A stretch of DNA of 64,000 nucleotides from Schmidtea polychroa (Eukaryota), in assembly GCA_044892525.1 (NCBI GenBank), contig CM097886.1:66712001-66776000 (forward strand), given 5' to 3'. Shown piece by piece: positions 13,701-62,062 of this stretch (its first letter is position 1; the number at the start of each line of letters is the position of its first letter). The translations under genes were made by a program, and so were the position numbers. Below the pieces are notes generated by a model. The model made no database searches. It saw nothing but the letters and a program-made list of their open reading frames with translations, and had not been told where the DNA came from.

Positions 13701-14329
13701 CNNNNNNNNNNNNNNNNNNNNNNNNNNNNNNNNNNNNNNNNNNNNNNNNNNNNNNNNNNNNNNNNNNNNNNNNNNNNNNNNNNNNNNNNNNNNNNNNNNN
13801 NNNNNNNNNNNNNNNNNNNNNNNNNNNNNNNNNNNNNNNNNNNNNNNNNNNNNNNNNNNTTAACATGGGATTATTCATATCTACTTTATACCTATCTATA
13901 TTCTCTACTATATTTTCGCTATCAGTTTTATATTCTACTTCAGCTAATTTCATATTTTTTGATATCAAATCAAATCCATTGAAAACCGCAAAACTTTCAT
14001 CCACTAAAATCGCGTCGATATTAAATATGGATTTTACAATTTTTCTAAATAAAATCAATAATTCTTATGTGCCATATCAAGCATTACTTGATGGATAATT
14101 TTTTAAATCCCGTCAAATATATTTTGGAACTTGTCTGCCTATCTTTATAGATTTCAAGAAGGAAACTTTCTAATTTCTCATTAATAACCGTTGAAAATCG
14201 CAAAGAAACTTTATCAGTTCGACAAATAAACACAATCTTTGCCGTTACGAGTCCACAGTCAATGGCTAAACTATTCTCATCAATAAATGGGAGGAATGAT
14301 TCCAATAAAACTGCTCCTTCAATAACCAT
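7724..14329 (-). CDS. Divergent type II pantothenate kinase-like protein, copy A
   Basis: Exons 14329-14088, 14044-~13860 (end in gap), 9232-9029, 8179-7910, 7870-7724. Motifs LAIDCGLVTAK, VDESFAVFNG, LVLAGSSFKY, GGESFRGL, GNRENTD, FSYGK, YFCGG, YLLALGA align in order with PanK motifs. Intron phases 2,0,0,0. Joining exons 2 and 3 across the gap is inferred from copies B and C. Confidence 0.8.
11190..11750. mobile_element. piggyBac-like MITE (left end degraded)
   Basis: The right end reads TTAACCCTTTGAGGACCGGC on the minus strand. The left end retains TTTGAGGGCCGGC. The interior is AT-rich. Confidence 0.5.
11747..12278 (-). mobile_element. Solo-LTR-like repeat (same family as the 41-46 kb copies)
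   Basis: Starts TGTCGGGTG on the minus strand. Shares the blocks GGGACCCC, CTCGGGCTTCC, TTCGACCAACTGGC and the 3' AATAAA...CACGAGAAGTCAGA...CCGACTTTA with the repeats at 43-46 kb. Confidence 0.6.
12777..12870. mobile_element. pogo/Tigger-type MITE end (partial)
   Basis: TA followed by CCGTATATACTCACATATAAGCCGA, same terminal family as 14620, 26598 and 53461. Confidence 0.6.
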
Positions 14330-14619
14330 GACTGTGTAAATGAAATGTGCATAAAATATTTCATTTAAATAGACATTTTGAACCATGACCAATGAAAAAT
14401 TAACACTTAAGTCATATAAAATAATTTTCGACAAGTTTAGAAATTAGTTAAAAAATTCAGTTAATTAGGCACTTGAAATAATAAAGTACATAATTTATTT
14501 GTCATTTATTAGGTTATTAAATTATTTAATTTATTATTAAATTATTTTTAAAATACTTTTAAATCGGAGATAACAAAACAAATTCAAACTGTACAAATAT
14601 ATTTTATTAAACAATCAGA

Positions 14620-14981
14620 TATCGTATATACTCGACTAAAAGGCGATTCAAGTATAAGTCGAAGTGTCATTTTTGGTAGAAAATAGTGTCTAAAATCAAT
14701 GACCCAAATATAAGTCGAAACATAAAATCGAACTTATTAAATAAAAGGTTAATATCTACTTTTAATAAAAAATTATCAACATGTTAATACAAATTAATAA
14801 CTTCCGGTTTGTATAGTACAAAAAAAGTAAGTACGGGAAGTATATTCAAATAAATGCAATTAAAATATAATTTAAAATCCTTGGTCTGAAATTCTCCCAT
14901 ATTATTTTCCTCCCGTGTATACGTCGAAGATCCTGAAAAATAGAACTAAATTTCTCGACTTATAGTTGAGTATACACAGTA
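14620..14981. mobile_element. pogo/Tigger-type MITE
   Basis: CGTATATACTCGACTAAAAG...TCTCGACTTATAGTTGAGTATACACAGTA inverted ends, with internal GTATAAGTCGAA subrepeats. Confidence 0.75.
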
Positions 14982-15233
14982 ATTTTATTTAAAATTACAC
15001 TGAAGAGAAGAAGTCAACTTTTTCCATTTTAAAATCATCAAAATTTTCCTCCTGTAGATAATTCGGTACGCATTTAATTTTGAATGTTTATAAATTATTT
15101 CATAGATTTGATAATTTACTTTACCAAATAATTTTTGTTCATTTAAACATTTCCAGGTTCCATAATAAATGCCATCAATTGAGGAAGATTAGTTTTGATT
15201 AAATTGACTATTTGTTGAAATAATAGTTTAGAC

Positions 15234-23000: not shown

Positions 23001-24063
23001 TAAAGATTAAATAAATTAAAACATGTGATCATGAGGAATATCTTTTCCGAAATAGTAATCTGTCTCTCAAAATGCGTGACGAATGGCAGGCGATCATTGT
23101 AAAACAGATATTCTCAAATCAGATATTATCCCGTCAACTTGAAGAGCATAATATAAATATTTAAAGCAAAATATTATTTGTTTAGGACAGTGGTTCTCAA
23201 ACGGTGTTCCGCGAAAAAAATGACATTTTATCTTTAAATTTGCATTTAAGATACATATCATCAAAAACCTCAATTAATCTTTTTATAAGATGATTCAATA
23301 AGAAAGCCGTTACACAGATATATAAACATACAAATATGAAAGTGTTTTTATTGCTTGTTATTGTTGCGCGTGGTATTTCCTTTGCTTATAAGAAGGTATT
23401 GTTTACGTTTACGACAGATTTATAGTAATTTGTGATTGGTCACTCATTGTGGGCAAGTAATTTTTTTGTCAGTGTTCCGCGTAAAAAAATCATGTGAATG
23501 GTGTTCCGCGCTTTTATATTAATTGAGAACAACTGGTTTAGGAGAACATCAACATAAAGTCTAATAAAAATGAATTATTAAATACCTTTTCCCATAATGG
23601 ATTGGAAAAGTTTATTTTATATTTCTCATAGAGATGGACGCCCCCTTCTACTTTTATTTCAATTTCACTCAATTGATAATTATCCGAAATCAATTGCACT
23701 CCATGAGAAAGTGCTGAAATCTCCTCAACAACATTTGCATCGGCATCAAATACAGATTTTACCATCGTTCTAAGACATTCTATAAAAAAAATGAAAATTT
23801 ACAATTTACTTTGCCCATAGATTTTTAAATCCAACTACAAAAATTTTCTCAAACGCATTTTGACCAAATGTTTCTTGAATTTCCAAAAGAGCATTTTCCA
23901 ATTCCTCATTGAGAACGCTTAGAGAACGCAACACCCGTTCATGATTTTCAAGTCCAACACTGAAAACTATCTTGGACGAAGAAATGCCACAGTCAACGGC
24001 CAACTGATTACCATTAATAAATGGTAATAATGATTCCGGTAGCTGTACAGCTTTATTCAACAT
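20005..24063 (-). CDS. Divergent type II pantothenate kinase-like protein, copy B (350 aa)
   Basis: Exons 24063-23810, 23769-23586, 22611-22408, 20456-20187, 20145-20005 splice GT-AG into one open frame. Motifs [52 protein letters not shown]. Confidence 0.88.
20591..21042. mobile_element. piggyBac-like MITE in intron 3 of copy B
   Basis: Inverted ends ACATTGTATGCGGG / CCCGCATACAATGTG next to TTAA. Internal duplicated motif TGCGGG(A/T)CACGTACTAGTACGTTTTT. Confidence 0.6.
23188..23535. mobile_element. hAT Charlie/Buster-type MITE in intron 2 of copy B
   Basis: TIR CAGTGGTTCTCAA / TTGAGAACAACTG. Exact 8-bp TSD GTTTAGGA (23180-23187, 23536-23543). Confidence 0.92.
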
Positions 24064-28682: not shown

Positions 28683-31600
28683 TCATTTTTCCAGGGCACC
28701 CAAAGCAAGAATATAATCCACATGTAAAAGCTTCGTTTCTATTAGCATTGGCATAATCATTTCACTAAGTTGAAGAATTTTGGAAAATATTGGATAATTA
28801 AATATATCTCCACAAAAATAAACCTAAACCAATTAATATCTATTTTCATTCAAAAGGAAATTACATATTTTATCTTGAAAGCCTTGCATAACGTTTTTAT
28901 TTGATGATTTATTTCCATTAAGAATAAAAAACTCAAAGACTCCAACATGTCGTTCGGGATGAAATCCTCTTTACCTTTATCATAATCGGCACATTTACCA
29001 AAAGAGAATATCGGAAGATCAGGAGGAAATTGTCCATATGGTGAAATTGGATTATCAGACAAAACTTCATAAACTTGTGTATCGGTTTTCTCTCTATTAC
29101 CTTTATATGCCAGCAACATGTTTTCCTTGAAATTCTAAATTTTCAAATTATGAATTTGTGGACTTACATATAAACATTACAAATATTAATTATTTTTCAT
29201 CAAATAATTTAGTTGAAACTTACAAATGTTCACTGACAAATTTACAATAGTTATTATTTGTTTTAATAATAGTTATTTGTTTTATTATTTACATTTTAAT
29301 TTTTATTATACTATACAAAAAGATACCACTTTATACTTAAAATATATAAAACATGCACAATAAAATATTACTTATAAAATAAAGACTATTTTTGAAGAAA
29401 AAATAATCTAATTATAAAAAAATGAAAAAGTTACTATGATTATTGAGAACATCTGAAAATTTAGGATCAACTAAAACATTCATAAAAAGTCTAAATTAAA
29501 CATTAAACATTCAACTACACAATTCAGCCATATGGGTTATTTAAAACTCGCTCAACATTGCTTTATACAGACTTGGTAGCTTTTTATTTTTACAGTTGTT
29601 GTTCAAAATATATATTAGATTCAGTGATTATTTTTAAAGTAGCAAAGTCAGAACGTGCTTGCATGATGAATGTTGAATTCTGGCTTCTCAGGTTATAATG
29701 TTAAATAATAAAAATAATAAAAAATGACATAATCTGAGGAGCCACATATTAAACATTCATTAAACAGCCATGAAGACATTATTACAAAATAATTATAAAG
29801 GTTTACATAATACACCAATCCTTCGAATTACGCGGTACCCATTTTACGTGGTTTCACTTTTACGCGGTCATAAAAAATAATATTTTTTAATGAAATCAAA
29901 CATATTTGGTGGCAAGTGTCTCTCAGTGACATCGATGAATTGTTTATTGAAAAGGAAATAGACGAAGAAGAATTGATTTATATGGTGTCAAGAAACGAAC
30001 AAGAGAATGTTGAAAGTAGCGTTGATAGTAATATTACTAATAAATCAAATAAATTTACATGTAAAGACATTTCTGAAATTTTACAATTGGCCAGTAACTT
30101 AGAAAATAAGGTTTTGGCCACTGATCCTGATATTGACCGTGCTGTTAAATTTCAGCGAGACATTAAAAGCCTTTGCGCACAATACAGTGAAATTTACAAA
30201 GATTTAAAAAAAAAGAAAAAACAAAAATTGGTTACAGACTATTTAATAAGACGAGAAGAAGAGCATCTGCTGGATTTGAATCCGATGATAGCAGCGATTT
30301 CGAGCCAAAAAAAAAGAAAAAATTGGTTGAATTAGTATATAGTAGTGAGGAGGCGGAATAATTAAATTACAATTATTCCTTTTAATATACCTTTTAACTA
30401 TGAACATGTTATAAATTTTACAATTTAAAATTTAAATGTCAATTTTTTAAATCTATTTCTAAATAAAATTGTATTTTTTAATGCCTTGTTTTACGCGAGT
30501 TTCTGGAACCTATCCCCTTACGTTATATGAACTGGAAGTCTCGATTTATGCAGATTTTTATTTTCTGGAACCTATCTATCATTTTTGTATGAATTTGAAA
30601 TGTCGATTTACGCGGTTTCGATTTGCGCGTTAGTTTCTTGGAACGTAAATCTAATATCTCATTACAATTGCATCACAACCAAGTTAATTAATTTATTAAT
30701 AAAAGTAAAAGTGTAAATTTGTTTTCGTATTTTTTTAAAAATCCAACAATAATAAAAAATAATAATATTATACAATATTTTCATAATGTAATGATTGTAT
30801 ATTGTTGTATTTTCATGATATTACATTTATAGAACGACACAATTCACGTATTAACACTGATAAATTTTGTAAATAAATAATTTCTACATCTTACATTTGA
30901 ATCGACAAGACATTTAAATAGACCCTTCAAGGTTTCACCAGCAAACATGGAATAGGAAATTAATTTCGCTGTTCCATCACTGCTCATTAAATAAATTTTA
31001 AAAGCCGAGCCACCCAATACAACGATGCTTGGAAAATTTATAACACTCTCACCGGATTTTGTGGCATCTGGCGTTGAAACCTGCATTGCTTCAATAAACT
31101 GAAATATTAAAACATTATTAATTGCTGCATACATCTATTTTTATTGAAATAAATTAAAGAAATACATTTCATCTGTATTATACTATGTTTCTTTAGTTGT
31201 ATAAAAACCTTTTAGCATTATTAACCATTCCTATTATTGGAATAGTACAATCAATGGAGTCAATACCAATCAGTCAGCAATACAAGAATACATTAGGGAA
31301 CCAGCTGATAAAACTGTAAGACTGTCTAAATCTTTACAAGAATACACATCTTATTTCATCATGTTGTTATAAGTCGCCCCATGAATACCAGAAGTTGGTA
31401 GCAAAATCAAGGGCAAACAATCAAGAGCAATATAACAAAGTTTTTCTTTGATATCTCGCACAATTTCTCTTTCGGCCGTAGTTGTAAAACTGTATCCTCT
31501 GCCTGTCATAATTTTAATTGGATAATTAGTTAAGTCTCTTCCGGCCGAATCAATTCTCAAAATAGCATGAGGTAGAGTATATGCTTCATAAATTGACAGT

Positions 31601-34600
31601 GTGCGGTAGAACAACTGCGGAATCTAAAACAATGCCTGTAGTTCTTCCTGAAGCATAAAACGACAGCACACATTGAATAGGCATCGTACATAGGAGGAAC
31701 ATTGAATGTTTAAAACATTATTTGAGTCACTTGGGATTCAGTGGCACTTCGAAAATAAATCCACTCGTCAAAACGTTTATATTTTAGACACAAAAAAACG
31801 AAATTGAAAGCATCAGAACAACAACACCTGGAATACAAATTCCAGAAAATTCAAAAAATAATTCTACTTAACAAAATCACCTTACAATTAAACAAAAAAA
31901 CATCCAACTCCTCGTATCTATGTGCTCACCCAACAGACAAAGCCAAATAACTATTGCGCACACTGACGCGACAACCGAAATAAAATAGCTATAGGATTCA
32001 ATTCTTCAGTCATAAGTCAATAGTTTTTAATAAATCTATTTCAATCAAATAATGTAAAATTTAATTTAACAATCTCACAATTACTAAACAAATGTTTACA
32101 AGACAAATAATAATTCTGATATTTTTATATTTTATATATTTTTACAGACATAAAATTTTAAGATTCAATATTTTCATACATTATTTGAAATTATAGTTTA
32201 TTTATTTATTTTTATTTTTTATTAACATTTATATTTTTTGAAACCCTTCTATATAAATATTTGAAATAACTTTTTAAAATAATTTTCATTCTTAACTTTT
32301 GTGTTTGTTAATGTTCTTCCTCAAAATTAGCATGGAATATACTTATACAAGGAGACATTGACACTTAACCCGTGGCTCCCTAAATATGATAGATCATGTA
32401 TACAAGGGGTTCAGACTATTTAAGTTTCCAAAATGTCGTAGATCATTATTAAATTCAATAAAGATTATATTTACACACACACACACACACTGAAAATTTA
32501 AATTATGTGCTACGATAAAATTCATTTTCTGGAATGCTCGAAATTAAAAAAAGTTTCATTAACCATTAAAACAAATGATAATTAAAATCACAGATTGAAT
32601 ATTTAGTTGTAGGAGTTAGGAAAAATTATAAAATTTTATCAAGATAAAAAAAAATATTAAAAATATTAATGATAACAATCAAAAGTCACTTGAAAATAAA
32701 ATTCATGTCTGTCATTCTACAATGGTAAATGAAAATACATGACCTTCAATTGTGATAATAATTGACATTTACTCACACAATTTAAATAAATAAAAACCAC
32801 CAAAATTCAATTATGAAAAAGTACAATTAAAACAAACTATTTGCATTCACAAGGTTCCTTCAAAATAGCCAAAAAATACAAACATTTTAGAAATGAATAG
32901 TTATAATCTAAGTTAAATTTAATTTATCTTAAGACATTTTTTTTATAGCATAAATCTTCCATCGAATTCATTTCTCCACAGCTTAACTCCATTTTGGTTT
33001 GGATGCCCTCATATTTGCAATAAGTGATTATTTAATTAATTAAACAAACAGCATTCTTTTTCGGACGTCGTTTTCCGAACAATATTGAATTCATGTAAGT
33101 TGGTCGTTATTACATGTAATAAAGATGAAAAAAATTATTTACTTTTTTAAATTTTAATATTGGACAATTTTGAGAAAGTTACTTTGTTGGCATTGTTTGC
33201 AATAAGTCATGCTGGTGGGCTGTTTTGTCGGGTCTATTTTTGACAGGGTACCATTTATTAAAAAAAAATTTTTGAATCCTCTTCCCTCAAACCATAGAAA
33301 TTGATATTTTTAATAATTTTATTAATTTTATTTTGATGCAATAAATATTTTCATGATTAAATTAATATAATATTATAAAGATGTCTTTTTGGAAATATTT
33401 TATTTCCATTTCATTTTTATTTATACTTTCGAAAAATGTCATTTTTACAATTTTATTCGATTAGTCTTTTATTAATTTGATGTTATATCAATCATATTAT
33501 ATGAGGTATCCATAAAGTCTGAGTAGCTAAGGCTTCTGAAACGATTTCAGGGGAAATTGAAACCGAAATATATTCTGCTGTTTTCAGTGGGTTTTAATTT
33601 ATGATCCATATATTTGCCATATAATGGTCAGCAAATACGAAATATAAAATATCTTAAATAGTTACAAACCATTCCAAATCTAGTCTGTCGTGGTGCACTT
33701 GCAATACTTTAAATTGTTTCCTATTTTCATAAGTATAAAGACAATTGTAGCTTTGTTACAATATGTGATAGAATGAATCTGTTAAAAGCAAAAGAAAAAA
33801 GAAACACTTAAATTATTGTTCTTGCTAATTTTCAACATGTCCATCATCATTACTAATACAAAGTGGAATACAATTCTGTAGTTTTCAGAAAAAAATTTGG
33901 AGCTGATTTTCATAAATGCCAGTAATCATAACTGCTATCCTGTTTTCCAAATGAATACTAAATAACATTTTTAAAGACCAAAATCCTAGATACTTCAAGC
34001 TTCCTAATCCGTACAGATTCTCAGATATTTTTAATTTCACACGAACTTTATGATGTAAATAATTTGGACTAAAAATATAATGACCACATTTTATTATTAA
34101 TTTATTTTATATTTCTTTGACACTCACTTCTTTTCTAACAATTTGTTAAATTTTTGTTTTAATGAATAGAAAACAAAATATTGATTTATAATCCAAAAGA
34201 AATAAAGATAAAAAATTGTAAATAAAAATAGATCAAAAGTGAATAAGTAAAAAGATTTTAATCTTTTAACTGGTGAATTTACTTATGAATATTATTAAAA
34301 TGACTAGTCTGTTTAGTGAAGCCTTTCAGTATGAGGTTTCTACGAGTGTTTAAATGTATAGTATAGAGCAGGGGTTGGGAACCTTTTTATATCCATAGGC
34401 AACATTGAAATTTGTCGCCTTCAAATGGGGCCACAGTCAAAAAGTATTTTAATATTAATTATTTTCATTTTAAATCTTTTGTTTATATACAGTTAGTAAT
34501 TAAAACAATGTTTATAATCAGCCTCCAGATTTGAAAAATGCAGCTGTACGAAATATTTTGGAAAATGTTTATTATTTTTGAATCGAAAAATTGATGCAAA

Positions 34601-35845
34601 TAAGTCATCATTTCACAAATGAGTGCTCAATAATCGTATTTATTCGTCTACATACGTTTTGTATTTGAATGATTGACTTTTATATTTCGTTCTTTGTACT
34701 CGACGGGATGCTTGTACAGTACGGTATATATACAGAGTTAACACCCCAGCATCGATATCTCATCATCATATTTAACTGTGAATGTTATTCCTGGTGCCAC
34801 ACAACTCCATAATCATTCAATTTGGCTAGAAAGATTCGAATATCCTATGGTGAAAACAGATGATTCGGCCACATTAGTAAATATAAATAATTACGCGAGC
34901 AAATAATCAGAAGAAAACGAAAATTATTCAAAAATCATTAACAAAGGAAACTACTCAATCTAGATTTTCACCATTAATTATATTTGTAAGGTTTTATGGT
35001 CTCTATATATATATACAGTTCAGTAGTTACAAGTATTTTTATTTGTATATAAATTAAGATTTATTTCGATAAGGCTCCGGAGGCCGCACACGAAGCTCCG
35101 GCAGGCTGCAGGTTCCCCACCCCTGGTATAGAGCGTGATATTTCCTACAGTCCACTGAATATTAGTTATTAAAATTCCACGACAAATTAACTCGTCATAA
35201 TCATTTAATTGAGAATTTTACTATAGTGAGTTTATTCACCATACCCAGTCAAAAGGTAATTATATAATATAGTATATTTATTATAAGAAGACAATTTATA
35301 ATTAAAAGATATTAGTTGTTTGAATGGACATTATTAAGCGATGTATGAAATATTATTAATTGACTACTTTTTTGAACATTGGATTATTCATATCTACTTT
35401 ATATTTCTCATAAAGTGATAAACTTTCTTCACTTTTTATTTCTATTTCACTCAATTGAAAATTATCCGAAATCAATTGCACTCCATGAGAAAGTGCTGAA
35501 ATCTCCTCAACAACCTTTGCATCGGCATCAAATACAGATTTTACCATCGTTCTAAGAAATTCTATAAAAAAAATGCAAATTTACAATTTACTTTGCCCAT
35601 AGATTTTTAAATCCAACTACAAAAATTTTCTCAAACGCATTTTGACCAAATGTTTCTTGGATTTCCAAAAGAGCATTTTCCAATTCCTCATTGAGAACGC
35701 TTAGAGAACGCAACACCCGTTCATGATTTTCAAGTCCAACACTGAAAACTATCTTGGACGAAGAAATGCCACAGTCAACGGCCAACTGATTACCATTAAT
35801 AAATGGTAATAAAGATTCCGGTAACTGTACAGCTTTATTCAACAT
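28683..35845 (-). CDS. Divergent type II pantothenate kinase-like protein, copy C (350 aa)
   Basis: Exons 35845-35592, 35551-35368, 31098-30895, 29134-28865, 28823-28683 have the same lengths and phases as copy B and give an open frame. Motifs [52 protein letters not shown]. Confidence 0.88.
29810..30650 (+). mobile_element. pogo/Tigger element remnant (transposase C-terminal tail)
   Basis: ORF 29916-30335 [18 protein letters not shown]...[17 protein letters not shown] resembles the Tigger tail. It is flanked by TTTACGCGG-type subterminal repeats. Confidence 0.7.
31270..31760 (-). pseudogene. Actin pseudogene, intronless and internally deleted, in intron 2 of copy C
   Basis: [69 protein letters not shown], then a jump to [13 protein letters not shown]; frameshifts present. 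Confidence 0.92.
34369..35125. mobile_element. hAT Buster-type non-autonomous element in intron 2 of copy C
   Basis: TIR CAGGGGTTGGGAACC / GGTTCCCCACCCCTG. Exact 8-bp TSD GTATAGAG. Confidence 0.92.
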
Positions 35846-35994: not shown

Positions 35995-38900
35995 TCACAA
36001 TTTAATTCGATTAACAATGGACTTCATATTAAGCAATTCGGCATTGAGATTCTTTTCATTAATCAAAAAGAAACATCGGATCAGGGAATCGGTTGTTGCT
36101 TTGTCAACCAAATATTTTCTCCAAGCCTCCAGACCTTTACTTAACAAAAGCTTTTGATTGTATTTTCCCCTGTAGGTGGATTCAAGTTCAGTAATTACTG
36201 ATTCGGGAATTCGAAGTTTACGAAACAAATGTCGAGTCCTCGAAATTGGGAATTTATTGCTGATGATTGGCATTAATTTATCGAGAATAGTAGCTAAAAT
36301 ATGAAATAAAATTATACAAAAATATGTAATGTTATTAAAATCTTTTATCGTTTTCATCAGTAATTTATTTTCATTTTCAGTTTTCATTAAATTCATTCTT
36401 TTCATAATAGTGATCAGTATTTTGTTTTTATTTGAAATAATTTTCGCACAACCAAATAAACATTTGAAGATGACTTTGCCGAACATTCGTGTTAAATATA
36501 AAACTAAATATTGATTTACAGTCTGAAAAAATTTCGCAATAGAGGAAATAAATAAATAAAAATATTATTTATTTAAATAAAAAAATTTTTTAATTTGTTT
36601 AGTTTTACTTTTTAGATGTAAAGAAATTGTTAAAAGAAAAGAATTTTCATTATTCAATTTAATTAAAATTATTTTAGTAGAATAAGACAGTTGTTATGCT
36701 TTTTAAGTAGTCGAAATAATAGGTAGTTAGTGGCCCTCTGGAGCAGACCATACCACACCTAGAGAATATTTTTTTAGTTCTCCAGAAGGGTAATTACTGT
36801 AAATTGGAAATGAGACTGCTCCAGATGAGTAATTTTTAACTACATCACATTTTTCAAACTACAGTCAAGTGGTATTTTTGGTCCTAGGAATTTTTGTACA
36901 CAAAATCTGAGTTTCGGTCTATCTATCCAAACATGATCTATCTAAGCATATAAAATCAAATTTATATAGAACAAAGCCGCTATCAAGTTCTCATCAATTT
37001 TAATATTTTTAAAAGTAGATTTTAATGTGTATGTTACAAGTATTTTATCAGTACTAAATAATCGTACATTCATTCTTCTATTCAAGTTTAGTGACAGTCG
37101 GATTTTGTTTACAAAAATTGTATAGACCTTAAAAATATATTGGCTTTTTAACGAGGACTGGGATTTCGTGACAAAACTATTGAGACCCTCTGACTACAGT
37201 GTGAATTTGATAAAAATACCCTGTCGCCCACTGCAACACAGGATTTTTAGCGAGCCTCGGATTTTGTGTACAAAAAATCCTGAGACCAAAAATACCCTCT
37301 CACTAGTGTGAAAAATGTTATAAAATTAAAAATTACCCACCTGGAGCACTCTCATTTCCGATTTACAGTGATTACCCCCCAGGAATACTAACATAGATTT
37401 TTCTAGGAGAGGTAGGGGGTACCAGAAGGTCTGTTCCTAATACCTACTTGAAATGTCTAAACTCGATTTACGTAGTTCCGAAAGAAAACATCAGTCTTTT
37501 TTTTACATAGTAAAAAATTCCGGTCTTTTTATTTCTAAGTATTAAGAAGAATATTGCATACATTTGAAACTAAAAAAAACAACTCCGTGGAGAAAAAACT
37601 AAAGCATAAATACAACAAATCCTAAATTCCTTTTTACAATTAACTGCAAGGTTAGAGGATAATATCGCTATAAACGTAGTAAATTTGAACATAAAAACGA
37701 AGCTAGAGGTTTCATCTCTAGATTTCATATTTATTTCTATATTTTAATTATATGTACACAAATGTATACACTTGCAATTATGAATGCTTTTCATATTTAA
37801 TTATAATATAGATTTTAATAAGTAAACATTACATTAAAAGTTCTTTTAAAAATAACTTTCATGTTTGTGACTCTCATTTCATTGTACATATTTATTCGTT
37901 AATTTTCGTATGTAAAGCATCAGACAAAGTACCATATGTTTAAAACAAAATGTTTAAAAAGTACATAAGCATGCGTTTAAATCAACGAAAAATGACAGAT
38001 TTTAATAAATAATTTGTATTTATAGTAAATGTGTTGTTTAAATTAGTGAACGCAGTTAAAATGAAATTTCGTAAACTGAACGACAACGTTATGGTTTTGA
38101 TGATAATTGGATTATTTTAAAAATATTTGCGTGTTGTTTAAATATTTCAGATTTTGGTGGGTGTTTTAAAACAAAATTTCATATTTTAATATTTTTCAAC
38201 AAATTTCTCGATAAATGAAGGAAATAAAAATTTCCTAAAAACTGTGTCAAAATTTGCTCTGAAGATTATTATGTTATTTATTTTCAAGGTCTTCAATAAC
38301 TTTTTAATACCCACTACGAACTGATGTATATTACGAATTTCGATTGCATCTTAATTGCATGTTACTATTTATAGATTTATAATGTAATTTATTTCCTAAG
38401 GTTCGCAACTTTGTATATATTATATATTAATTTATTAAATAGGGAAATTAATTTTACCATCCAATTCACTGTATGCCGTAAGATAGCTGCATATTGGAAT
38501 CATTTGTCCACAGTTGTATACATCAGATGGAGGAATTTTGCAGGGATTTCCTTGTAAATTCAAATATCTTAGCTTACTAAATTTCGTAAAGGCGGTTGCT
38601 GGAAGAACTGAAATTACATTGTTCGACAAATCCAAAGACTCAAGTCTGTCTTGAAACTCCAATACAAAACCAGATTCTATCACTTTAATTTTATTTCCAC
38701 TCAATGAAATCGAAGTTAAATTTTTCATTTGAAACATTTGCTCAGGAATCAACCTCAGACAATTATTTGAGAAATTGATTTCTTTAAGATTATTCAGCTG
38801 ACCCAAGCGCTCATCTATTTCTGTTAATTTTTTCCCTTTATCTTGATCGTATTTGAATACTTTCAATGAAGTAAATGAAAAAACAATTTCAAGAATTCCA

Positions 38901-40407
38901 TCACTATTTGTGTTTGATAGATTCAAATTTTCTATACTATTTAATTTGACTATACCGTTTGATTGAATTGATTCGACAGGATTATCCGACAAATCAAAAT
39001 CGATTATTGATTCGGGTAGGCATGGAAATGACTGAATTCTGTTTCTACTCAAATTGAATGTCTGCAATCGTGTCAAAGATATTATTGATTCCGGAATTGC
39101 CTCGATTTCATTGGCTGTAATTTCAATGGAATTTAATGTAGCGATTTTTGTGAGAATTTCCGGAAAATTATTGAATCTATTATTTGATAAGTTAATTTTT
39201 CGAAGAGATTCCATATATTCCATAATTACCGGCAAAGAATTCAGTTCATTGTTGCTTAGGTCTAAAATTTGCAATTTTTTGAGAGAACCAAAAATTTCCG
39301 GAATCTCGCTGATTTTATTATTGGTCCATTTCAAAACGGCTAAAGAAAGACAGTTTTTAAAATCTATTGGCAACTGTGTAATGTGATTGTTACTGATATC
39401 GAGTATTCTCAAATTGTTATAATAACCAAAATCATCAGAAAGAGATGAAAAATTGCATTGATCAATCAACAATTCACTCAACGAAGTCAAGAGAATTGAT
39501 CCAGGTAGATTTGTAATTTTGGAATTTCCAGGAAGATTTAAGTATTTCAAAGATAATAATTCTCCTATATTTGATGGAATTTCGATAAACTTATTAAATG
39601 ATAGATTTAAAACTATTAACTTTTTCAATTTTCCAATATCCATTGATAAATATTGGAGATCATTGTAACAAATGTTTAATTCCAAAAGATTAACCAATTC
39701 AAAGATATACTGAGGCAGATTTGTAAAATTATTATTCCCAAGTTGTAAGATTTCAAGATGTTGTAGTTCTTTAATTGTTTCCGGTAAATTACTCAAGTCA
39801 TTATTATTTACTATTAAACTCGTAAGCTGTTTAAGGGAGCCAACACCGTTTGGAATGGAACCTAAGTGATTGTGACTGCAATCAAACGATAACAATTCAG
39901 ACAGAAAACATAAAGTTTCCGGGAATGTATTTAATTGATTTCCACTTATGTTAAAAAATTGAAGTTTTGAAAAATTCTCGATTAATTCTGACAATACTGT
40001 CAAATTATTATTAGCTAAATCTAAATAAATCAAATTTTCCAAATCAAAAAAAGTGTCTTCCAAATTTGAAATATAGTTATGTGAAAGATTCAAATACGTA
40101 AGAGATGTTAGTTGATTAATTGCTATCGGAATTTCTATTATTTCATTACCGTTTGCTATTAGTCCTTCTAAATCTTTTAAATTACACAATTTATCGATTT
40201 TCTTTACTTTGGAATAGCTACAATTAAGGATATTAAACCTTTCCTTTTCAACGAAATCTTCATTAACACTATCAATTTCTTCTTTTGTTAGAGTTTTACA
40301 AATTTTATTTTCATAAATAAGTGCGTTAAAACTCCTAAATTATATTTTATATCTTACAATTAGGTTTAATAATAAAAATGTTACTTTAAGTTATCGTATT
40401 CAATCAT
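35995..40407 (-). CDS. LRRD1: Leucine-rich repeat and death domain-containing protein
   Basis: Exons 40407-40385, 40334-38458, 36293-35995 (phases 2, 1). More than 20 LRRs end in PPSDVYNCGQMIPICSYLTAYSELD, which splices in frame to ATILDKLMPIISNKF...LFRKLRIPESVITELE...LEAWRK...ATTDSLIRCF (death fold). This LRR-cap/death junction matches the LRRD1 C-terminus as I recall it. Confidence 0.82.
36720..37446. mobile_element. Foldback MITE with long imperfect inverted repeats, in the LRRD1 intron
   Basis: TACTGTAAATTGGAAATGAGACTGCTCCAG pairs with CTGGAGCACTCTCATTTCCGATTTACAGTG, and GGTATTTTTGGTC...TTTTTGTACACAAAATC pairs with GATTTTGTGTACAAAAAA...GACCAAAAATACC. Confidence 0.75.
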
Positions 40408-45389: not shown

Positions 45390-46270
45390 TTTAACAAGTC
45401 CAATAGTTTTTGACTCCTCGTGTACTTTTCCAATCAAGTAACAAAAACTAACATAGAACAACTTTATTCGAACTGTATCACAATTACAAATAGTCACTCA
45501 ATTTGCAACTTTCTTTCTTAGACACTCGTTACCGTAAGATAAGTTGCACAAGGGATATTCACCTTTCTGGTACAATAAATTATAATTTTGCTCAGGATTT
45601 ACTTCTATTAATTTCTCTTGGAATCTCTTGATTTGTAGTTTCTCGCTAACGTTATTTCTTCGACCAACTGGCAACTCGTCTCTGTTTAGCTTTTCCTATT
45701 ATACTTTTCAAAACAACATTGTCAATATCAAATTAATTCCACAGGGAATACCGACCTTTACCCCACCGTTATTTTAATCCTTGTGAGGATTATTGACTTT
45801 CTCCTTATTCATTGGCTATTCGTTATTTCAATCTTAGGTGATGGAATTTTTGTTATCCCGCTAATATTTTTTCTAGACGGCCGCTCGATCAATTTGCTTT
45901 ACTTCCCAATTAGTAGGGTCTTATTGCTTTCAGCGTTTTCCTCATTGGTCAAGTTTCTCGTTGTATCAGGCTTCTCATTAGCTCGGGATCTCCATTAGCG
46001 ATTAATTAATTTTTAATTAGATTGTTATTTTATTATAACTTTCCCTAGGGACCCTTCAATAAATTTTTATTATTGTTTTTAAATTTGTCTCATGATTTCC
46101 CCGATTGATATTACCTTTTACCTTTTATTCATTTTTCTAATTAATTTTCGCACTTTTGTTATTCCGGTGTTTTTATTGATTTTTATTCTACTTTCGTTCT
46201 ATTTTGTGATTTTTTTACATTACGCCAACCAAATTATTTTCCTCTTCTAATTGTCCGTCATTACGACTAT
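45390..46270 (-). mobile_element. Solo-LTR-like repeat
   Basis: Same 3' motif (CACGAGGAGTCAAAAACT), with TTCGACCAACTGGC and AGGGACCCTT blocks. Confidence 0.65.
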
Positions 46271-46495: not shown

Positions 46496-49016
46496 ATGAA
46501 AACATTTAATATAGAAAAATCCATTCTTACAAATTCTGAATGCTTTCTCACAATTGACATTGGAGTTTCAACAATAAAATGCTTCTACCTCGACAAAGAA
46601 AATGACCATTATAACGAAAATTCACAGAATAATGATGTAATTTTTACATTAAAATCTACAAATTTCAACATTCAAATTGAAAACTTTCTACAAAATATCA
46701 AATCTAACTTGTCAACTCTTGAAACCATTGAAACAAAATTAATATTAATTTGTGGAATTCAATGCAAACATTTCCAGTGAACCTTTGACGATTATAAAAA
46801 TGAAATTTTAATGATAATCTCTTAGATCGGAAATCTCGAAGGTGTTTGGTTGTGAGGTAAAAGTTGTATCAGAAATGACTGCGTTTGCGAATGGTGTGAG
46901 ATATTTTGTAAATCATCATGAAAGGGATACATTTTACCATCAAGCCGAAAATATTTCAGATACTCCTGCAAAATTTCAAAGTAAAATGCGGGAACAAGTG
47001 ATTATTAGTAATAAAATTAATTTCAATTAATTGTCATTTAGTTATTGAAAAGTTGGAAAGCAAAACGCGAGTTATTATTAAAGGATTCAACGAGTGAAGA
47101 ATATCCATGTCTCTATGTGAATGGGGGATCCAGTTGCCGTTATATATTAGTTGATGAATATGGTAAAGGAAAAGAGGTTTCATTTAATAGTTACGGAGGA
47201 AGCACTTTCCAAGGCTTAGCAAAATGTCTAATAGATGAAAATGTAATTTAATTTATTAAATTATAATAGTATGGTTATAAGCCGAAGGATCAAACATATA
47301 ATAATTCTTTCCAAACATTTAAAACTAAATAATTTTTGAAACTTCATATATTGTTTTAAATACTTTATAAAACCTTTCACTTTTTCATAATTTTATTTCA
47401 ATTTGACCAAACAAATCGTCATACAATACATGTACATATATATACGTGCGCAAAAAAAATTTGACAGTATACTTTCTTTTCATTTTTGTCAGTATTCCTT
47501 TACTTTATTCACCATAACTCATACGCAATAATAAAAAAATTATGAAATCTATAGAAACTATAAATAATGCCAAAATGGATGTTTCAGTTCCAAGAAAACT
47601 TCGTTTAATTCACAGAGTCATCTATAGGCTGACATACAAAATGTTTTCAGCCAATAAAATGAGATCATGAATTCTATTTGATACAATACATATGTGAATG
47701 TAGAACATGTTGAAGCCGCTACGATGTGTCCAAGATTCTCACCAAAATGAGCACAACTGGCTCAGTATCTCAACGTGAAGGAAGTTGAAGAAAGCGAAAG
47801 ACAACTGGCAGAGAGAACCGGATCGTCAAATGTGTCACATTAGCCAATCGAGAAACAAAGCTTTCTGGTGTTGTGAATATTTTAAAATCTGACCATGGAA
47901 TAAACATCAGTCGAGACACTATTCGTCGTAGGTTGAATGAACAGGGGATAGCCACTTACTCTTGTCGACATGTTCCTATAGAAGGCGAGTCATATGACTT
48001 CATATGACCAAATATAGCTTTTTAATTTAAGCAATTTTAAACACCTTTATGGCCACGGCCCTCTTAGACAGTTGGGTACTTACTATTCTTTGGTTCTTAA
48101 TTTGTCAATCTTAACCATTCAACGCTTCCTTATCATTTTACCGCTTGAGTGCAACATTTATTGATAAAATGTTTTATTTTTTGGTCATTTTGATCTGTTA
48201 ACGTTTTTGAAGGCATTTCACTTATTTTAATTTTGAAAATATATCAAAAATTGAATTCTACGCAACAGAAACCTGTTGCAATGCCTTTTCACTTGTTATT
48301 TAACACTTGGTAAAGGCAAAGCCAAAAATTTGTTTTGGTTAGAATTAGATTTTTGATATTTTGTCAGAATGAAAAAATAATATACATATATCAACAAAAA
48401 CATATTTAGAAACGGATAAAAGTTCCATGACAAACATCACGGTAAAAATAAACGTATGCATATAAACATACAGCATTTTTATATATTAGTAAAAACGAAG
48501 TAACACGTCCTTTGAAATTTATTTTCTTTAATTAAAGAACACTTCAAAACTGCTTGAAATGGCTGAAGTTGGATTCAAAGAAAACACTGACACTCAAATC
48601 AAAGACATATTTGACGATTTCAAAAACAACCCATACGGAAAATTTTCACCAAATATGCCCTTATTTGCATACGGAAAAGCAACGGATTATACGTCAGTTG
48701 ATCAGATCCCATTTAAAGATGAAGACATTTCCCAATCTCTGGTATCAATGGTAATCCAGAATTCAATATTGTCTGCTAATAGAATAGCATTTACGACATT
48801 ATGTAAAAAGGTTTGTAACAAAAGTTCTGAAGATATATTTTTACTCTTTTCTAAACTTAGATTTATATTGGAGGGTATTTGTTTCAGCACAAATCCTTCT
48901 TGGTGGAATACTCTAAATTCTGCGTGAGGCTACCAGGAATAATAAAAATACACTTTTTGAAGTGTGGATTCGAGGCAAATCTTGGTTTGTTGGTTAACCA
49001 TAATCAAACAGAATAA
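46496..49016 (+). CDS. Divergent type II pantothenate kinase-like protein, copy D (360 aa)
   Basis: Exons 46496-46776, 46826-46997, 47042-47242, 48538-48810, 48861-49016 give an open frame. Motifs LTIDIGVSTIK, VSEMTAFANG, LYVNGGSSCRY, YGGSTFQGL, FAYGK, EDISQSL, YIGGYL. Confidence 0.9.
47450..47980 (+). pseudogene. Tc1-like transposase N-terminal remnant with left TIR, in intron 3 of copy D
   Basis: YDVSKILTKMSTTGSVSQREGS*RKRKTTGRENRIVK...HGINISRDTIRRRLNEQG matches the Tc1 HTH and GRPRK linker. A TIR-like TACGTGCGCAAAAAAAATTTGACA lies near 47450. Confidence 0.8.
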
Positions 49017-49429
49017 ACATAACGGAATCATATATAATAATATTAGTGACATTTTTTTATATATATTTTTTCCACATTCACTTTATGAACATAAACATGT
49101 ATAAATAATACAGAAATTAAGAGTTACAAAATATTAAATAATTACAATAATTTACAGACTGTATTTATTAAACTTTATACAATGGCGACTCGTACTCAAA
49201 AACTTTGTGAAAGCAATAAAAAAAAATTTAAAAAAATTAAAAAATTTTTTTATTTATATAAAAACTCAAATCCTTCGACAAAATTCTTTAATTACTAAAT
49301 CACAAAAAAATTGTCTTTAGTAGCCAAAAGTTCTTTTTAAAAGATATTAAAAATTAAAAATATAGAATTTCTCAAAATTGAAGTGCAAGCAATGCTTGCA
49401 CTGCTTATATGGACGAGCCGCCACCGACT

Positions 49430-49640
49430 TTATAGCAAGTTTTAAACTTAGTCATGTTGATTATGAGGACATTATTTATTTTTTGGACGTAAGATAGTTA
49501 AGGCGAGGTAAAATGTTAAAAAGATTTTATGATTTGCGAAATGAAATCAATTCGTTTATGGTATCAAAAATCAAAATGTGTGCCAGAACTTGATGATGAA
49601 AATTGGCTCACGTATTTGACATTTTTAGTAGACTGGGCAG
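49430..49640 (+). pseudogene. hAT (GTF2IRD2-like) transposase fragment
   Basis: HVDYEDIIY, RGKMLKRFYDLRNEINSFM, PELDDENWLTYLTFLVD. Confidence 0.75.
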
Positions 49641-55321: not shown

Positions 55322-56951
55322 ATGGAGAAACTGAAAATAGAAAAATCCAATTTGACAAGTAGTTCTACTTACGTAACAATAGACATTGGAATATATTTAC
55401 TGAAATGCCTTTACATCAACCATGAAGATGATGAATACAATTCTGATTTACAAAACCATGATATTATTTTCACATGCAAGATCATCGAGGCTAAAAATGA
55501 ATTTTGTGAATTAATTAAAACAATTAAATCTAAAATAACAAATTTGACATTTTATCAAACCAAAATCGTCTTACTCTGTGGGATGAAGGCTAATCATTAT
55601 CGGTTGGATAAAAATATTATAATAAATAATTAACATAATTCAGAGGACAAATTTCTAAAATATTTGATTGTGAAGTAAAACTTGTATCTGAAATGCAGGC
55701 AATGTCAATTGGGCTTCGNNNNNNNNNNNNNNNNNNNNNNNNNNNNNNNNNNNNNNNNNNNNNNNNNNNNNNNNNNNNNNNNNNNNNNNNNNNNNNNNNN
55801 NNNNNNNNNNNNNNNNNNNNNNNNNNNNNNNNNNNNNNNNNNNNNNNNNNNNNNNNNNNNNNNNNNNNNNNNNNNNNNNNNNNNNNNNNAGAAAGTGTAG
55901 AATTTCCAATGTTATCAATGCACAGTAAGTCAATTGATATGGTTAGTTACTTTTTATGAAAACTATTTCACAATAAAATTAGTTTCGTAGATGTTGGAGT
56001 GATAAAATCGAAAAAGAATGCATCAATAAAATGAATAAGAATTTTCCAATTCTCTATGTTAGTGTAGGATCCGTATCAAGGTTTATATTAGTCAATGAAA
56101 CTGGAGAAGGAAAGGAGATTTCATTGAATACACTAGGGGGTGGTACATTTTTAGGACTAGCAAAAAGCTTGCTGAATGAAAATGTTTGTTTCTATCTTAT
56201 TTCAAATTNNNNNNNNNNNNNNNNNNNNNNNNNNNNNNNNNNNNNNNNNNNNNNNNNNNNNNNNNNNNNNNNNNNNNNNNNNNNNNNNNNNNNNNNNNNN
56301 NNNNNNNNNNNNNNNNNNNNNNNNNNNNNNNNNNNNNNNNNNNNNNNNNNNNNNNNNNNNNNNNNNNNNNNNNNNNNNNNNNNNNNNNNNNNNNNNNNNN
56401 NNNNNNNNNNNNNNNNNNNNNNNATTGTTTTTATTTATCAAAATTCCAGAATTTCAACAGTATTATATCTAAAGCTGAAAATGGAGATAAAGGAAATATT
56501 GATACCCAAAGAAAAGATATAAAACCCGCAAAAGATTTAGAAAATTCTTCGAGTGGAAGGTATTTGGCTGACTTGACTGTATTTCCATTTGGTAAAGCTA
56601 TGGATATTGAATCAAATTATACCTTACCGTACAAACTCGAAGACATTTCTCAATCTTTAGTTGCAATGATTATAGAGAGTGTTTCTTTTTTCAGCTTTCG
56701 TGTAGCGTTTATGACTTGTTGCAAAAGTGTAAGTTTTTAAAGAAAATCAAAAGTATTTAAATTGATCAACATTTCTATTTTAAAATTAGATTTATTATGG
56801 AGGGTGCTTATTCCAACCGAAAGCTTTTCGAATAGAATATAGAAAATTCTGTCAACGCTTACCAGAGTTAATAAAAAGTTATTTTCTAAAAACAGGAATG
56901 GAAACAAATATTGGTCTATTATTATTAAATAAAACAAATTTTACAATTTAA
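55322..56951 (+). CDS. Divergent type II pantothenate kinase-like protein, copy E (gap in exon 2)
   Basis: Exons 55322-55602, 55644-55941 (contains a gap), 55983-56183, 56450-56728, 56790-56951. Motifs VTIDIGIYLLK, VSEMQAMSIG, LYVSVGSVSRF, TLGGGTFLGL, FPFGK, EDISQSL. Confidence 0.85.
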
Positions 56952-59468: not shown

Positions 59469-62062
59469 ATGAAAACATTTAATATAGAAAAATCCATTCT
59501 TACAAATTCTGAATGCTTTCTCACAATTGACATTGGAGTTTCAACAATAAAATGCTTCTACCTCGACAAAGAAAATGACCATTATAACGAAAATTCACAG
59601 AATAATGATGTAATTTTTACATTAAAATCTACAAATTTCAACATTCAAATTGAAAACTTTCTACAAAATATCAAATCTAACTTGTCAACTCTTGAAACCA
59701 TTCAAACAAAATTAATATTAATTTGTGGAATTCAATGCAAACATTTTCAGTGAACCTTTGACGATTATAAAAATGAAATTTTAATGATAATCTCTTAGAT
59801 CGGAAATCTCGAAGGTGTTTGGTTGTGAGGTAAAGGTTGTATCAGAAATGACTGCGTTTGCGAATGGAGTGAGATATTTTATAAATCATCATGAAAGGGA
59901 TACATTTTACCATCCACCAGAAAGTGTGTCAAATATGTATGAGCAAGTTCATAGTAAAATGCTGGAAAATGTAATTATTTATATAAAAATTAATTTCAAT
60001 TAATTGTAATTTAGTTATTGAAAAGTTGGAAAGCAAAACGCGAGTTATTATTAAAGGATTCAACGAGTGAAGAATATCCATGTCTCTATGTGAATGGGGG
60101 ATCCAGTTGCCGTTATATATTAGTTGATGAATATGGTAAAGGAAAAGAGATTTCATTTAATAGTTACGGAGGAAGTACTTTCCAAGGCTTAGCAAAATGT
60201 CTAATAGATGAAAATGTAATTTAATTTATTAAGTTATAATCCTATGCTTATAGCTGAAGGGGAGGGGTAGAACTATAATATAAACTTTTTTTTCTTCAGA
60301 GCCATGGCCGTATTAATAAGTTTGAGCGCCCTGGGCTAAATAAAATTTTGCACCCCTACATACTCTTATTATAAAAATTCAATTTTATTTTCAAAAATTC
60401 AAAACTTAAATATGTATTTACGCAAAACAAAATTCAAAAAATTTATATAAATATGTGAATTAAATATTAATTTTTAATTTAAATATGTCTTTTGCGGCAT
60501 TTATTTTTAGCAAATATATCTATAATTTTCTTGTGATCCATTTTCTCAAGGACATCCGATTCTATTGACAAAATACTTAAATTATTTAATTTGTATTGTC
60601 CTAAAGATGATCTTAGATGATTTTTTATTCTCTTGAGAGTTGAAAACGACCTTTCTCCGCTACAATTTGTACAGGCGATACTTAAATATATTCGTAGAGC
60701 TGTTGTTATATTCGGAAAAGTGCATTCAATTTGCGATTCAATTATTGTTATATTTTTTCTCATCCATATAATTTATATGGATGAGAAAAAATATAACATT
60801 GAACACATTACTAACTTAAATCACAGATACGCTAAATATAAAGAAAATTACTTTTTTTTAAATTAAAAAAAAGCAATTAAATTTCACCATATTGTTTTCT
60901 TAGCGCCCCTGGGCTGTAGCCCAATTAGCCCTATGGTTAATGGGGCCATGTTCAGAGCTATTATAACTCTTTTTTGTCAGAGTAAACTTTCGATTTTATA
61001 ACTCTTCAAAAATTATAAATAAAATATTTTAATTTGGTTAAACATTGCTGAATTAAAAAAATACTATATAATATAAATAAAAAGTGATGATTACTTGGTA
61101 GCAGCATCAATTGAAAAGGGCTCCATTTTAGTCGAAATTTTTTTCATTTGTATTAAATATATTATTCGCAGCAAAAGGCCTTAATTATCATTAAATTGTT
61201 TTAAAATAAAAATATATTATAAAATTTTATTACTGCATTAAATCACATACATAGTTTTTATATTTAATTTTTAATTTATTTAATAATTGATTTAATATTA
61301 ATAATTCTTATAATTTTAATTTGATTATGTTAATTTCATCTTTAAATTATTAATAATTTATTTTTGATATATAATCTAACGTTGATTATGATTTATATTA
61401 AAAATATTAGATTAAAATTAAATAGCATTAAATTAAAATTTATCACTATTGCATAGTAATAGTTTAATTTATGTTATTGAGACTCTTATTTATTGTCATT
61501 AAGGTTCTTATTAATTGATTAAAAGATTTAATAATGTTTAATGATTCTTTTCAATTTACATATTTTAATTTAAGAACATAAATAAATTGCTTGCGATGGC
61601 TGAAATTGGAAACAGAGAAAATATTGACACTCAAATCAAAGACGTATTAGATGATAATAAACTGTCCCCATATGGAAAGTATCCACCAAATTTACCTATA
61701 TTTTCATTTGGTAAAGCAATGGATTATACTTCAACTGACAAAATTACATGTCAAAATGAAGACATTTCTCAATCCTTGGTGTCAATGATAGTTGACAATT
61801 CTGTATTCTTTGCTTTAAGGATAGCGACGATGACATTATGTAAAAAGGTTTGTAAAAAAAGTTCTGAAAATTTTATATTAAATGATTTTTTTTAATTTAG
61901 ATTTATTTTGGAGGTAATTTGTTTCAACACAAATCCTTTTTGGTGGAATACTCTAAATTCTGCATCAGGCTACCAGAAACAATAAAGACTCATTTTCTAA
62001 AGTGTGGATTCGAAACAAATATTGGTTTGGTGGTTGAAAATAATCAAACGGAATCCATTTAA
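59469..62062 (+). CDS. Divergent type II pantothenate kinase-like protein, copy F (362 aa)
   Basis: Exons 59469-59749, 59799-59970, 60015-60215, 61575-61847, 61901-62062 give an open frame. Exons 1-3 are nearly identical to copy D. Confidence 0.9.
60303..60950 (-). mobile_element. hAT non-autonomous element carrying the dimerisation domain, in intron 3 of copy F
   Basis: TIR CATGGCCGTATTAA / TTAATGGGGCCATG. Exact 8-bp TSD TTCAGAGC. ORF FPNITTALRIYLSIACTNCSGERSFSTLKRIKNHLRS. Confidence 0.93.

Follow-up and report, generated by a model that had tools for sequence, protein, structure and literature searches.

The window analysed here, a stretch of 64,000 nucleotides (nt) at G000:C2:66712001-66776000 of a 781-Mb intron-bearing genome, carries an array of six paralogous genes, copies A to F, related to the type II pantothenate kinases (PanKs; the Fumble family, with the ASKHA fold). 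The reading that we favour, to which we give a little under an even chance, is that these genes are working members of an uncharacterised annelid/flatworm branch of the type II PanKs, predicted to act as dimeric kinases that use the Glu138 equivalent as the catalytic base on a substrate other than pantothenate. Residues are numbered as in human PANK3.

The central observation is a pair of substitutions in the pantothenate pocket. Replacement of Ser195 by Lys/Arg and of Arg207 by Leu/Glu, which the sequence-only reading had reported for all six copies, was confirmed in each of them, and the codons were located (Table 1). The peptide strings quoted in that reading are all present in the window, and our exon-3 alignment reproduces each of the six. 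Its gap-free manual alignment also holds, as the same register was obtained from four alignments. The phmmer alignment of copy D exon 3 with PDB chains is gap-free over PANK3 from the VNIGSGVS motif to the GGGTF motif, and the full-length relative P0005 aligned with PANK1 in the same register as copy D exon 3. A 32-sequence profile aligned over the full length with PANK1/3 (E-value ~1e-67) and a MAFFT alignment with canonical PanKs again gave this register, and the GS and GG motifs are equally far apart in all sequences. Lys206, which adjoins position 207, is invariant in the six copies, and a local strand bulge may place it at the Arg207 site.

The literature bears out the roles previously assigned to these positions. 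Pantothenate is hydrogen-bonded by Glu138, Ser195 and Arg207 and, from the partner protomer, by Val268' and Ala269' (PMC8366970). The E138A variant of PANK3 is catalytically inactive, and the hydrogen bond from pantothenate to Arg207 was also described in that work (PMC6199309), while PANK4 carries E138V and R207W (PMC8861153).

Comparison of the six copies with canonical PanKs separates retained from lost residues in the way previously proposed. Asp17, Lys24, Glu138 and Ser192 are kept in all six copies, as is Gly19, and the second P-loop Gly and the TGGG loop are changed in all six along with Ser195 and Arg207. Only 40 of the 302 shared columns (13%) are invariant across the copies, and these include Asp17, Gly19, Lys24, Glu138, Gly191, Ser192, Lys206 and Gly215. 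The chance that all four catalytic positions fall in invariant columns is ~3e-4 (hypergeometric), a figure that is not independent of the frequent structural importance of such positions. The adenosine-motif Gly is also retained. The P-loop reads DIGVS, DIGIY, DCGIS or DCGLV against the canonical DIGGT, and the TGGG loop (canonical ATGGGA) reads CGIQ, CGMK, VGFK or TGFK. The equivalents of Tyr254 and Tyr258 in the partner flap are gone in every copy, and Asp137, next to Glu138, is retained only in copy A and gone in copies B-F. Flap positions 250, 253 and 254, which in PANK3 hold the gem-dimethyl group (PMC6199309), are still hydrophobic in the six copies. At position 216, copies A-C have Glu, copies D and F have Ser and copy E has Gly.

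The profile scores place the genes in the Fumble family (PF03630). Single exons score close to the Pfam cut-off of 28.5 bits (28.1 bits for exon 3 of copy D, 29.2 bits for exon 3 of copy E) or over it (31 bits for exon 4 of copy F), and full-length relatives score 92.8 (P0005), 50.8 (P0002), 122 (P0004) and 162 bits (P0041). To delimit the group, the exon-4 alignment was used in an exhaustive profile search against 1.84 billion cluster representatives. The search returned 57 matches, about 40 of which are PanK-like proteins of ~360 amino acids (aa), the remainder being canonical PanKs and fragments. A word-indexed protein search found no match for the paralogue L008, at C2:65.25 Mb, and P0005 alone for P0005, leaving the profile search as the one route to the family, and a metagenome contig scan with the exon-3 profile gave 126 pattern matches, none of which was confirmed. 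In a maximum-likelihood tree, the divergent proteins form a single clade against canonical PanKs with a Shimodaira-Hasegawa-like approximate likelihood ratio test (SH-aLRT) support of 100. An inner subclade with a support of 85 unites copies D-F and P0005, copies A-C and P0002, and the paralogue at C2:65.25 Mb. Within the D-F group, P0005 is placed with copy E. The stems leading to A-C and D-F are long, at 1.18 and 1.1 substitutions per site, respectively. The named members of the clade, each annotated as "hypothetical" (e.g. PAA87033.1, CAH1779408.1 and ELU06650.1), come from the flatworm Macrostomum lignano and the annelids Owenia fusiformis and Capitella teleta. Among the papers covered by our literature search, none describes a PanK-like or Fumble-domain paralogue family. 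We infer from these sequence relationships that the window cluster is a fast-evolving, planarian-type subclade of an annelid/flatworm PanK-like clade.

The wider clade shows which of the changes are old. In 21-26 members of the clade other than the window cluster, P0002 and P0005, we scored each column that does not vary among six canonical PanKs. Asp17 (100%), Lys24 (91%), Glu138 (87%) and Ser192 (88%) are largely kept, whereas Ser195 is kept in 12% and Arg207 in 4%, which dates the loss of these two residues to an ancient event and not to one in the cluster. Gly216 is kept in 0%, the position usually being occupied by Lys/Arg within a GGK-S/T-F-L-G-L motif, and no basic residue is conserved across the wider clade at 195, 206 or 207. 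The proposal that a positive charge was relocated from 207 to 195 within the six copies is not supported in that form by this comparison, since Arg207 and Ser195 were already rare clade-wide and the basic residue of the clade sits at Gly216. What is new in the window cluster is Lys/Arg195, found outside the window and P0005 only in the Macrostomum protein P0006, together with the disappearance of the clade's Lys216 and of its TGxG loop and a bulky residue at the second P-loop Gly.

The same genome has at least 11 exon-4 matches to this clade, not all of them intact genes, with six in the window and five elsewhere (Table 1). L008 is an intact gene of 369 aa in which a TGTG loop and Lys216 are retained; the adjacent L021 lacks the GS motif and carries Gln at the Glu138 position. 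Canonical PanKs are encoded at two loci (C1:129.9 Mb and C3:72.9 Mb); Glu138, preceded by Asp or Glu, is intact in each, as are Ser195 and Arg207. With two canonical PanKs possessing all the pantothenate-binding residues, coenzyme A (CoA) synthesis should therefore be independent of the six copies. The genome appears to come from a free-living flatworm, the nearest named homologues being from Macrostomum, so that host metabolites, once suggested as a pool of candidate substrates, are not applicable.

The AlphaFold2 model of P0005 has a mean predicted local distance difference test (pLDDT) score of 88.2 and a predicted template modelling (pTM) score of 0.88. A search of this model against the PDB returned only type II PanKs among the top 50 matches (human PANK1/2/3, yeast Cab1 and Staphylococcus aureus PanK-II; E-value ~1e-19, TM-score ~0.66). 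Against AlphaFold-DB clusters, the best match reached a TM-score of 0.80 and has an accession that appears to belong to the same series as the Macrostomum entries; all later matches are canonical PanKs. With P0005 as a proxy, the six genes share the type II PanK fold. In P0005, Arg184, the 195 equivalent, opens strand 183-188, and Glu196, the 207 equivalent, lies in strand 195-200. The homodimer model of P0005 gave an interaction prediction score from aligned errors (ipSAE) of 0.72, compared with 0.00 for the best-scoring of three controls, with at least 78% of contacts agreeing between runs and a partner pLDDT of at least 75, although this pass may reflect memory of solved PanK dimers. Of proteins solved as one-chain pairs, 21 of 30 reach the mark applied; of 23 solved as single chains, none does. 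The modelled interface includes the P-loop (24-25), the GS loop (181-182), the helix 200-214 starting from the 216 equivalent and the partner flap 259-264 (equivalent to Val268'/Ala269'), which makes a composite active-site pocket like that of PANK3 plausible.

Copy D is expressed. Four GT..AG joints (46776/46826, 46997/47042, 47242/48538 and 48810/48861) occur in RNA-type contigs from runs X1-X3 of two studies, and in the copy D region such contigs fall only on its exons. The DNA run X5 spans the whole copy D stretch without the four joints; the contrast identifies copy D as a transcribed and spliced five-exon gene. The RNA contig joining exons 3, 4 and 5 has zero mismatches to copy D and is specific to it because copies D and F differ by 37% over the same exons.

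The ratios of non-synonymous to synonymous substitution rates (dN/dS) are low. For whole genes, they are 0.31 between copies B and C and 0.41 between D and F; over exons 3-5, they range from 0.18 to 0.38 where dS is measurable, with an outlier of 0.55 between C and E at near-saturated dS. Given the low dN/dS and the saturation of dS between the A-C and D-F subclades, the copies are old and constrained, and judged by these ratios they are under purifying selection. These results bear directly on the possibility that the array consists of decaying duplicates under relaxed constraint, whose shared substitutions are inherited damage. The long stems to both subclades could be taken in this sense, as could a decayed exon 1-2 duplicate in an intron of copy A and the transposon remnant and actin fragment in other introns. 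Set against them are ORFs (open reading frames) of 350-362 aa with conserved GT-AG introns in at least four copies, the spliced expression of copy D, dN/dS well below 1 although between-copy dS exceeds 1, and the invariance of the catalytic residues. We consider decay largely refuted and leave it a very small chance. Of the earlier suggestion of changed specificity rather than simple decay, the part that stands is changed function, for which splicing, ORFs, dN/dS, the invariant catalytic residues and the recurrence of the Arg195/Glu207 pair in P0005 and P0006 all speak; the charge relocation attached to it is not supported in the form proposed.

We propose that the six proteins would form PanK-like homodimers or heterodimers in which the partner's flap closes the pocket, and that Glu138 would serve as the base for phosphorylation of a hydroxyl on a small molecule other than pantothenate. 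Flap positions 250, 253 and 254 stay hydrophobic, so that the pocket may still accept a pantoyl-like or other apolar moiety. The cluster would have exchanged the clade's Lys/Arg216 for Lys195 and Leu207 in copies A-C or for an Arg195-Glu207 pair in copies D-F, and would have lost the TGGG loop as well, so that both the pocket and the grip on the nucleotide would have changed again within an already non-pantothenate family. Glu207 is only ever found with Arg195, in copies D, E and F, in P0005 and, independently, in Macrostomum P0006. These two independent cases suggest a coupled pair, while falling far short of a test, and a salt bridge between Arg195 and Glu207 in copies D-F would fit no less well than a free charge that binds the substrate. 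A more far-reaching version of this model, put forward tentatively and in our view somewhat unlikely, is that the whole annelid/flatworm clade is a new small-molecule kinase family with a non-pantothenate substrate. In this version, the six-gene cluster would represent a second re-engineering of the pocket (Lys216 to Lys195 or Arg195-Glu207; glycine loop to Lys/Gln), with paralogues that have distinct substrates or form regulatory heterodimers.

Known PanKs frame the alternatives. The human PANK1-3 and yeast Cab1 enzymes resemble the six copies in the two-domain ASKHA fold, in length and in full-length profile homology. They have Asp17, Gly19, Lys24, Glu138, Gly191, Ser192 and the adenosine-motif Gly in common with them, and the dimer predicted for P0005, subject to the caveat given above, would use the same helix and flap as theirs. 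The six copies differ from them at Ser195, Arg207, the TGGG loop, the second P-loop Gly, Asp137 (copy A excepted), Tyr254 and Tyr258, carry clade-specific motifs such as an SPYG loop and a DTQ stretch, and belong to a separate clade. PANK4 is, like the six copies, a PanK-II paralogue without Arg207 that exists beside active PanKs. In PANK4, however, Glu138 is missing too (E138V) and the kinase-like domain is joined to a DUF89 phosphatase (PMC8861153), whereas the six copies keep Glu138 and the window proteins, at 350-362 aa, end after the kinase fold with a Fumble domain only and no second domain. Apicomplexan PanK1 and PanK2 are, like the array, divergent PanK-II paralogues in one genome, each without some of the composite-site residues (PMC8366970). 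Their losses are complementary, with Asp137 missing in one and Tyr254/Tyr258 in the other, and the heteromer has one complete pantothenate site. In contrast, one and the same set of pantothenate contacts is missing from copies A-C and D-F, in a genome that also has canonical PanKs. The Macrostomum, Owenia and Capitella proteins belong to the same clade, keep the catalytic residues and lack Arg207, and P0006 also has Arg195 and Glu207. Most of them keep the TGxG loop, a small second P-loop residue and Lys/Arg216, unlike the faster-evolving window cluster, which has none of the three.

Several observations weigh against an active kinase. The TGGG loop is gone in all six copies, and Val, Ile or Leu occupies the second P-loop Gly, with the Thr21 hydroxyl also absent from copies A and E; because of these P-loop and TGGG changes, ATP binding could be weakened or abolished. 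The Arg195/Glu207 pair of copies D-F may merely fill the pocket, and the conservation of Asp17, Lys24, Glu138 and Ser192 could be due to a role in folding or in binding a ligand instead of catalysis. Moreover, the structural evidence comes from P0005, a close relative standing in for the D-F subclade, and not from a protein of the window. Such points lead to the alternative that the genes encode pseudoenzymes with a PanK-like fold and dimer and no phosphate transfer, serving as ligand sensors or as regulatory or scaffolding partners that possibly pair with one another or with a canonical PanK. We regard this as a serious possibility, if not a probable one. None of the copies has Ser195, Arg207, Tyr254/Tyr258, the TGGG loop, the second P-loop Gly or the Lys216 of the clade, and only copy A has Asp137; the pocket could be closed by the Arg195/Glu207 pair, Gln stands for Glu138 in a neighbouring paralogue at C2:65.25 Mb, and the predicted dimer interface is retained in the P0005 model. 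The kinase-like domain of PANK4 (PMC8861153) and the apicomplexan PanK1/PanK2 heteromer with its one active site (PMC8366970) are precedents. However, Glu138, Asp17, Lys24 and Ser192 are invariant in the six copies, where 13% of columns are, and are kept at 87-100% clade-wide, whereas PANK4, the known pseudo-PanK, lost Glu138. The losses in A-C and D-F are also not complementary and would yield no complete composite site of the apicomplexan kind.

It is improbable, in our estimate, that the six copies are still pantothenate or pantetheine kinases in which the carboxylate or amide is held differently, for example by Lys/Arg195 or, after a one-residue strand shift, by Lys206. This possibility draws on the invariance of Lys206 beside position 207, on the retention of a basic residue at 195 across a saturated divergence, and on the persisting hydrophobicity of the flap positions by which PANK3 holds the gem-dimethyl group. 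The alignment methods, however, concur on the gap-free register, residue 206 in the strand points away from the direction of 207, and an acidic Glu sits exactly at 207 in copies D-F. In addition, two canonical PanKs are already in the genome, and the wider clade has no conserved basic residue at 195, 206 or 207. A dimeric kinase with Glu138 as the base and a substrate other than pantothenate accordingly remains the reading that we prefer, at the strength given above.

Table 1. Exon coordinates of the six copies (window positions), codons equivalent to PANK3 positions 195 and 207, and exon-4 matches elsewhere in the genome (contig positions).
Feature	Strand	Exons or span	195 equivalent	207 equivalent	Remarks
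Copy A	-	14329-14088, 14044-13860 (into masked N 13859-13702), 9232-9029, 8179-7910, 7870-7724	Lys, 9133-9131	Leu, 9097-9095	
Copy B	-	24063-23810, 23769-23586, 22611-22408, 20456-20187, 20145-20005	Lys, 22512-22510	Leu, 22476-22474	350 aa
Copy C	-	35845-35592, 35551-35368, 31098-30895, 29134-28865, 28823-28683	Lys, 30999-30997	Leu, 30963-30961	350 aa
Copy D	+	46496-46776, 46826-46997, 47042-47242, 48538-48810, 48861-49016	Arg, 47138-47140	Glu, 47174-47176	5 exons, 360 aa; RNA joints
Copy E	+	55322-55602, 55644-55718 (then masked N), 55983-56183, 56450-56728, 56790-56951	Arg, 56079-56081	Glu, 56115-56117	
Copy F	+	59469-59749, 59799-59970, 60015-60215, 61575-61847, 61901-62062	Arg, 60111-60113	Glu, 60147-60149	5 exons, 362 aa
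L008, L019, L021		C2:65246761-65251150			two exon-4 matches
L022		C2:10895461-10974679			one exon-4 match, at 10.97 Mb
L007, L023		C1:103259552-103266648			two exon-4 matches, 103.26 Mb

The window has ~26% G+C, and long ORFs are scarce. Searches with tblastn, using the three open frames at 46496-47242 and then the downstream exons of copy F, located the six loci, with copies A, B and C on the minus strand and copies D, E and F on the plus strand. The span 46496-47242, to which the sequence-only reading was confined, lies within copy D and covers exons 1-3 only, the gene extending to 49016. ORFs are intact in copies B, C, D and F (350-362 aa), and intron positions and phases are common to the copies; the protein of exon 1 is identical in B and C. 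Copy E is interrupted by N runs at 55719-55889 and 56209-56423 and has an open frame in all readable sequence. In copy A, two or three codons are masked as N and the rest is open; its exons 1-2 (14329-13860) lie 4.6 kb upstream of exon 3 and do not adjoin it. We rejected the notion that copy A is broken at its 5' end: the frameshifted stretch at 10120-9680 does not represent its exons, and tblastn with the exons of copy B found the real ones. The stretch at 9680-10120 (minus strand) is a decayed exon 1-2 duplicate within the 4.6-kb intron 2 of copy A, with at least two frameshifts, a deletion of ~16 codons and several stops.

Other introns hold insertions as well. An actin-like fragment at 31354-31623 (minus strand; Pfam Actin, E-value 7e-7, profile positions 158-246) lies in intron 2 of copy C and is probably a piece of a processed pseudogene. 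The 1295-nt intron 3 of copy D holds, at 47873-48007 (plus strand), what is left of a transposase helix-turn-helix of Tc1/mariner type (PF01498, E-value 5.9e-6); the matching intron of copy F is of similar length. Copy D is flanked by high-copy repeats at 45927-46053 and 49229-49482, where the contig depth in the DNA run is ~7,000-15,000, against ~60-100 nearby. Between the A-C and D-F halves of the array lies a single-exon ORF of 584 aa (38435-40189, minus strand) that consists almost entirely of leucine-rich repeats (LRR_8, E-value 6e-58).

The 5' halves of copies B and C, and likewise those of D and F, are nearly identical, with a proportion of synonymous differences (pS) of 0-0.08 compared with 0.3-0.7 in the 3' halves. 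These tracts (23586-24063 vs 35368-35845; 46496-47242 vs 59469-60215) look like the signature of gene conversion. The D/F tract is broken by a 56-nt patch at 46942-46997, the last 19 codons of exon 2, which differs at most positions. The RNA contig over this patch, like that joining exons 3-5, is specific to copy D. A 116-nt RNA contig matches 30 nt on either side of the patch, with 56 unmatched nt between, and would fit a spliced copy F transcript. RNA contigs on exons 1-2 of copy D mix D-like and F-like bases and are not assignable to a single copy; such mixed bases occur at 46730, 46774, 46862 and 46908 in both RNA and DNA contigs.

To our knowledge, type II PanKs have been treated as single-purpose enzymes, and among departures from this rule only the dead PANK4 domain and the apicomplexan one-site heteromer have been studied well. 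Labels of "pantothenate kinase" on genes such as those described here are probably wrong. Planarian papers mention a "pantothenate kinase 1" as a differentiated-cell marker and a "pank3" in a stem-cell screen; the mislabelling may extend to planarian marker genes called pk or pank. The array offers natural variants at positions 195, 207 and 216, expressed genes and canonical controls in the same genome for studying the specificity of the PanK pocket. The retention of the catalytic residues across a whole clade from which the pantothenate anchors have gone suggests that the PanK scaffold carries a kinase activity or a ligand-sensing role not recognised so far.

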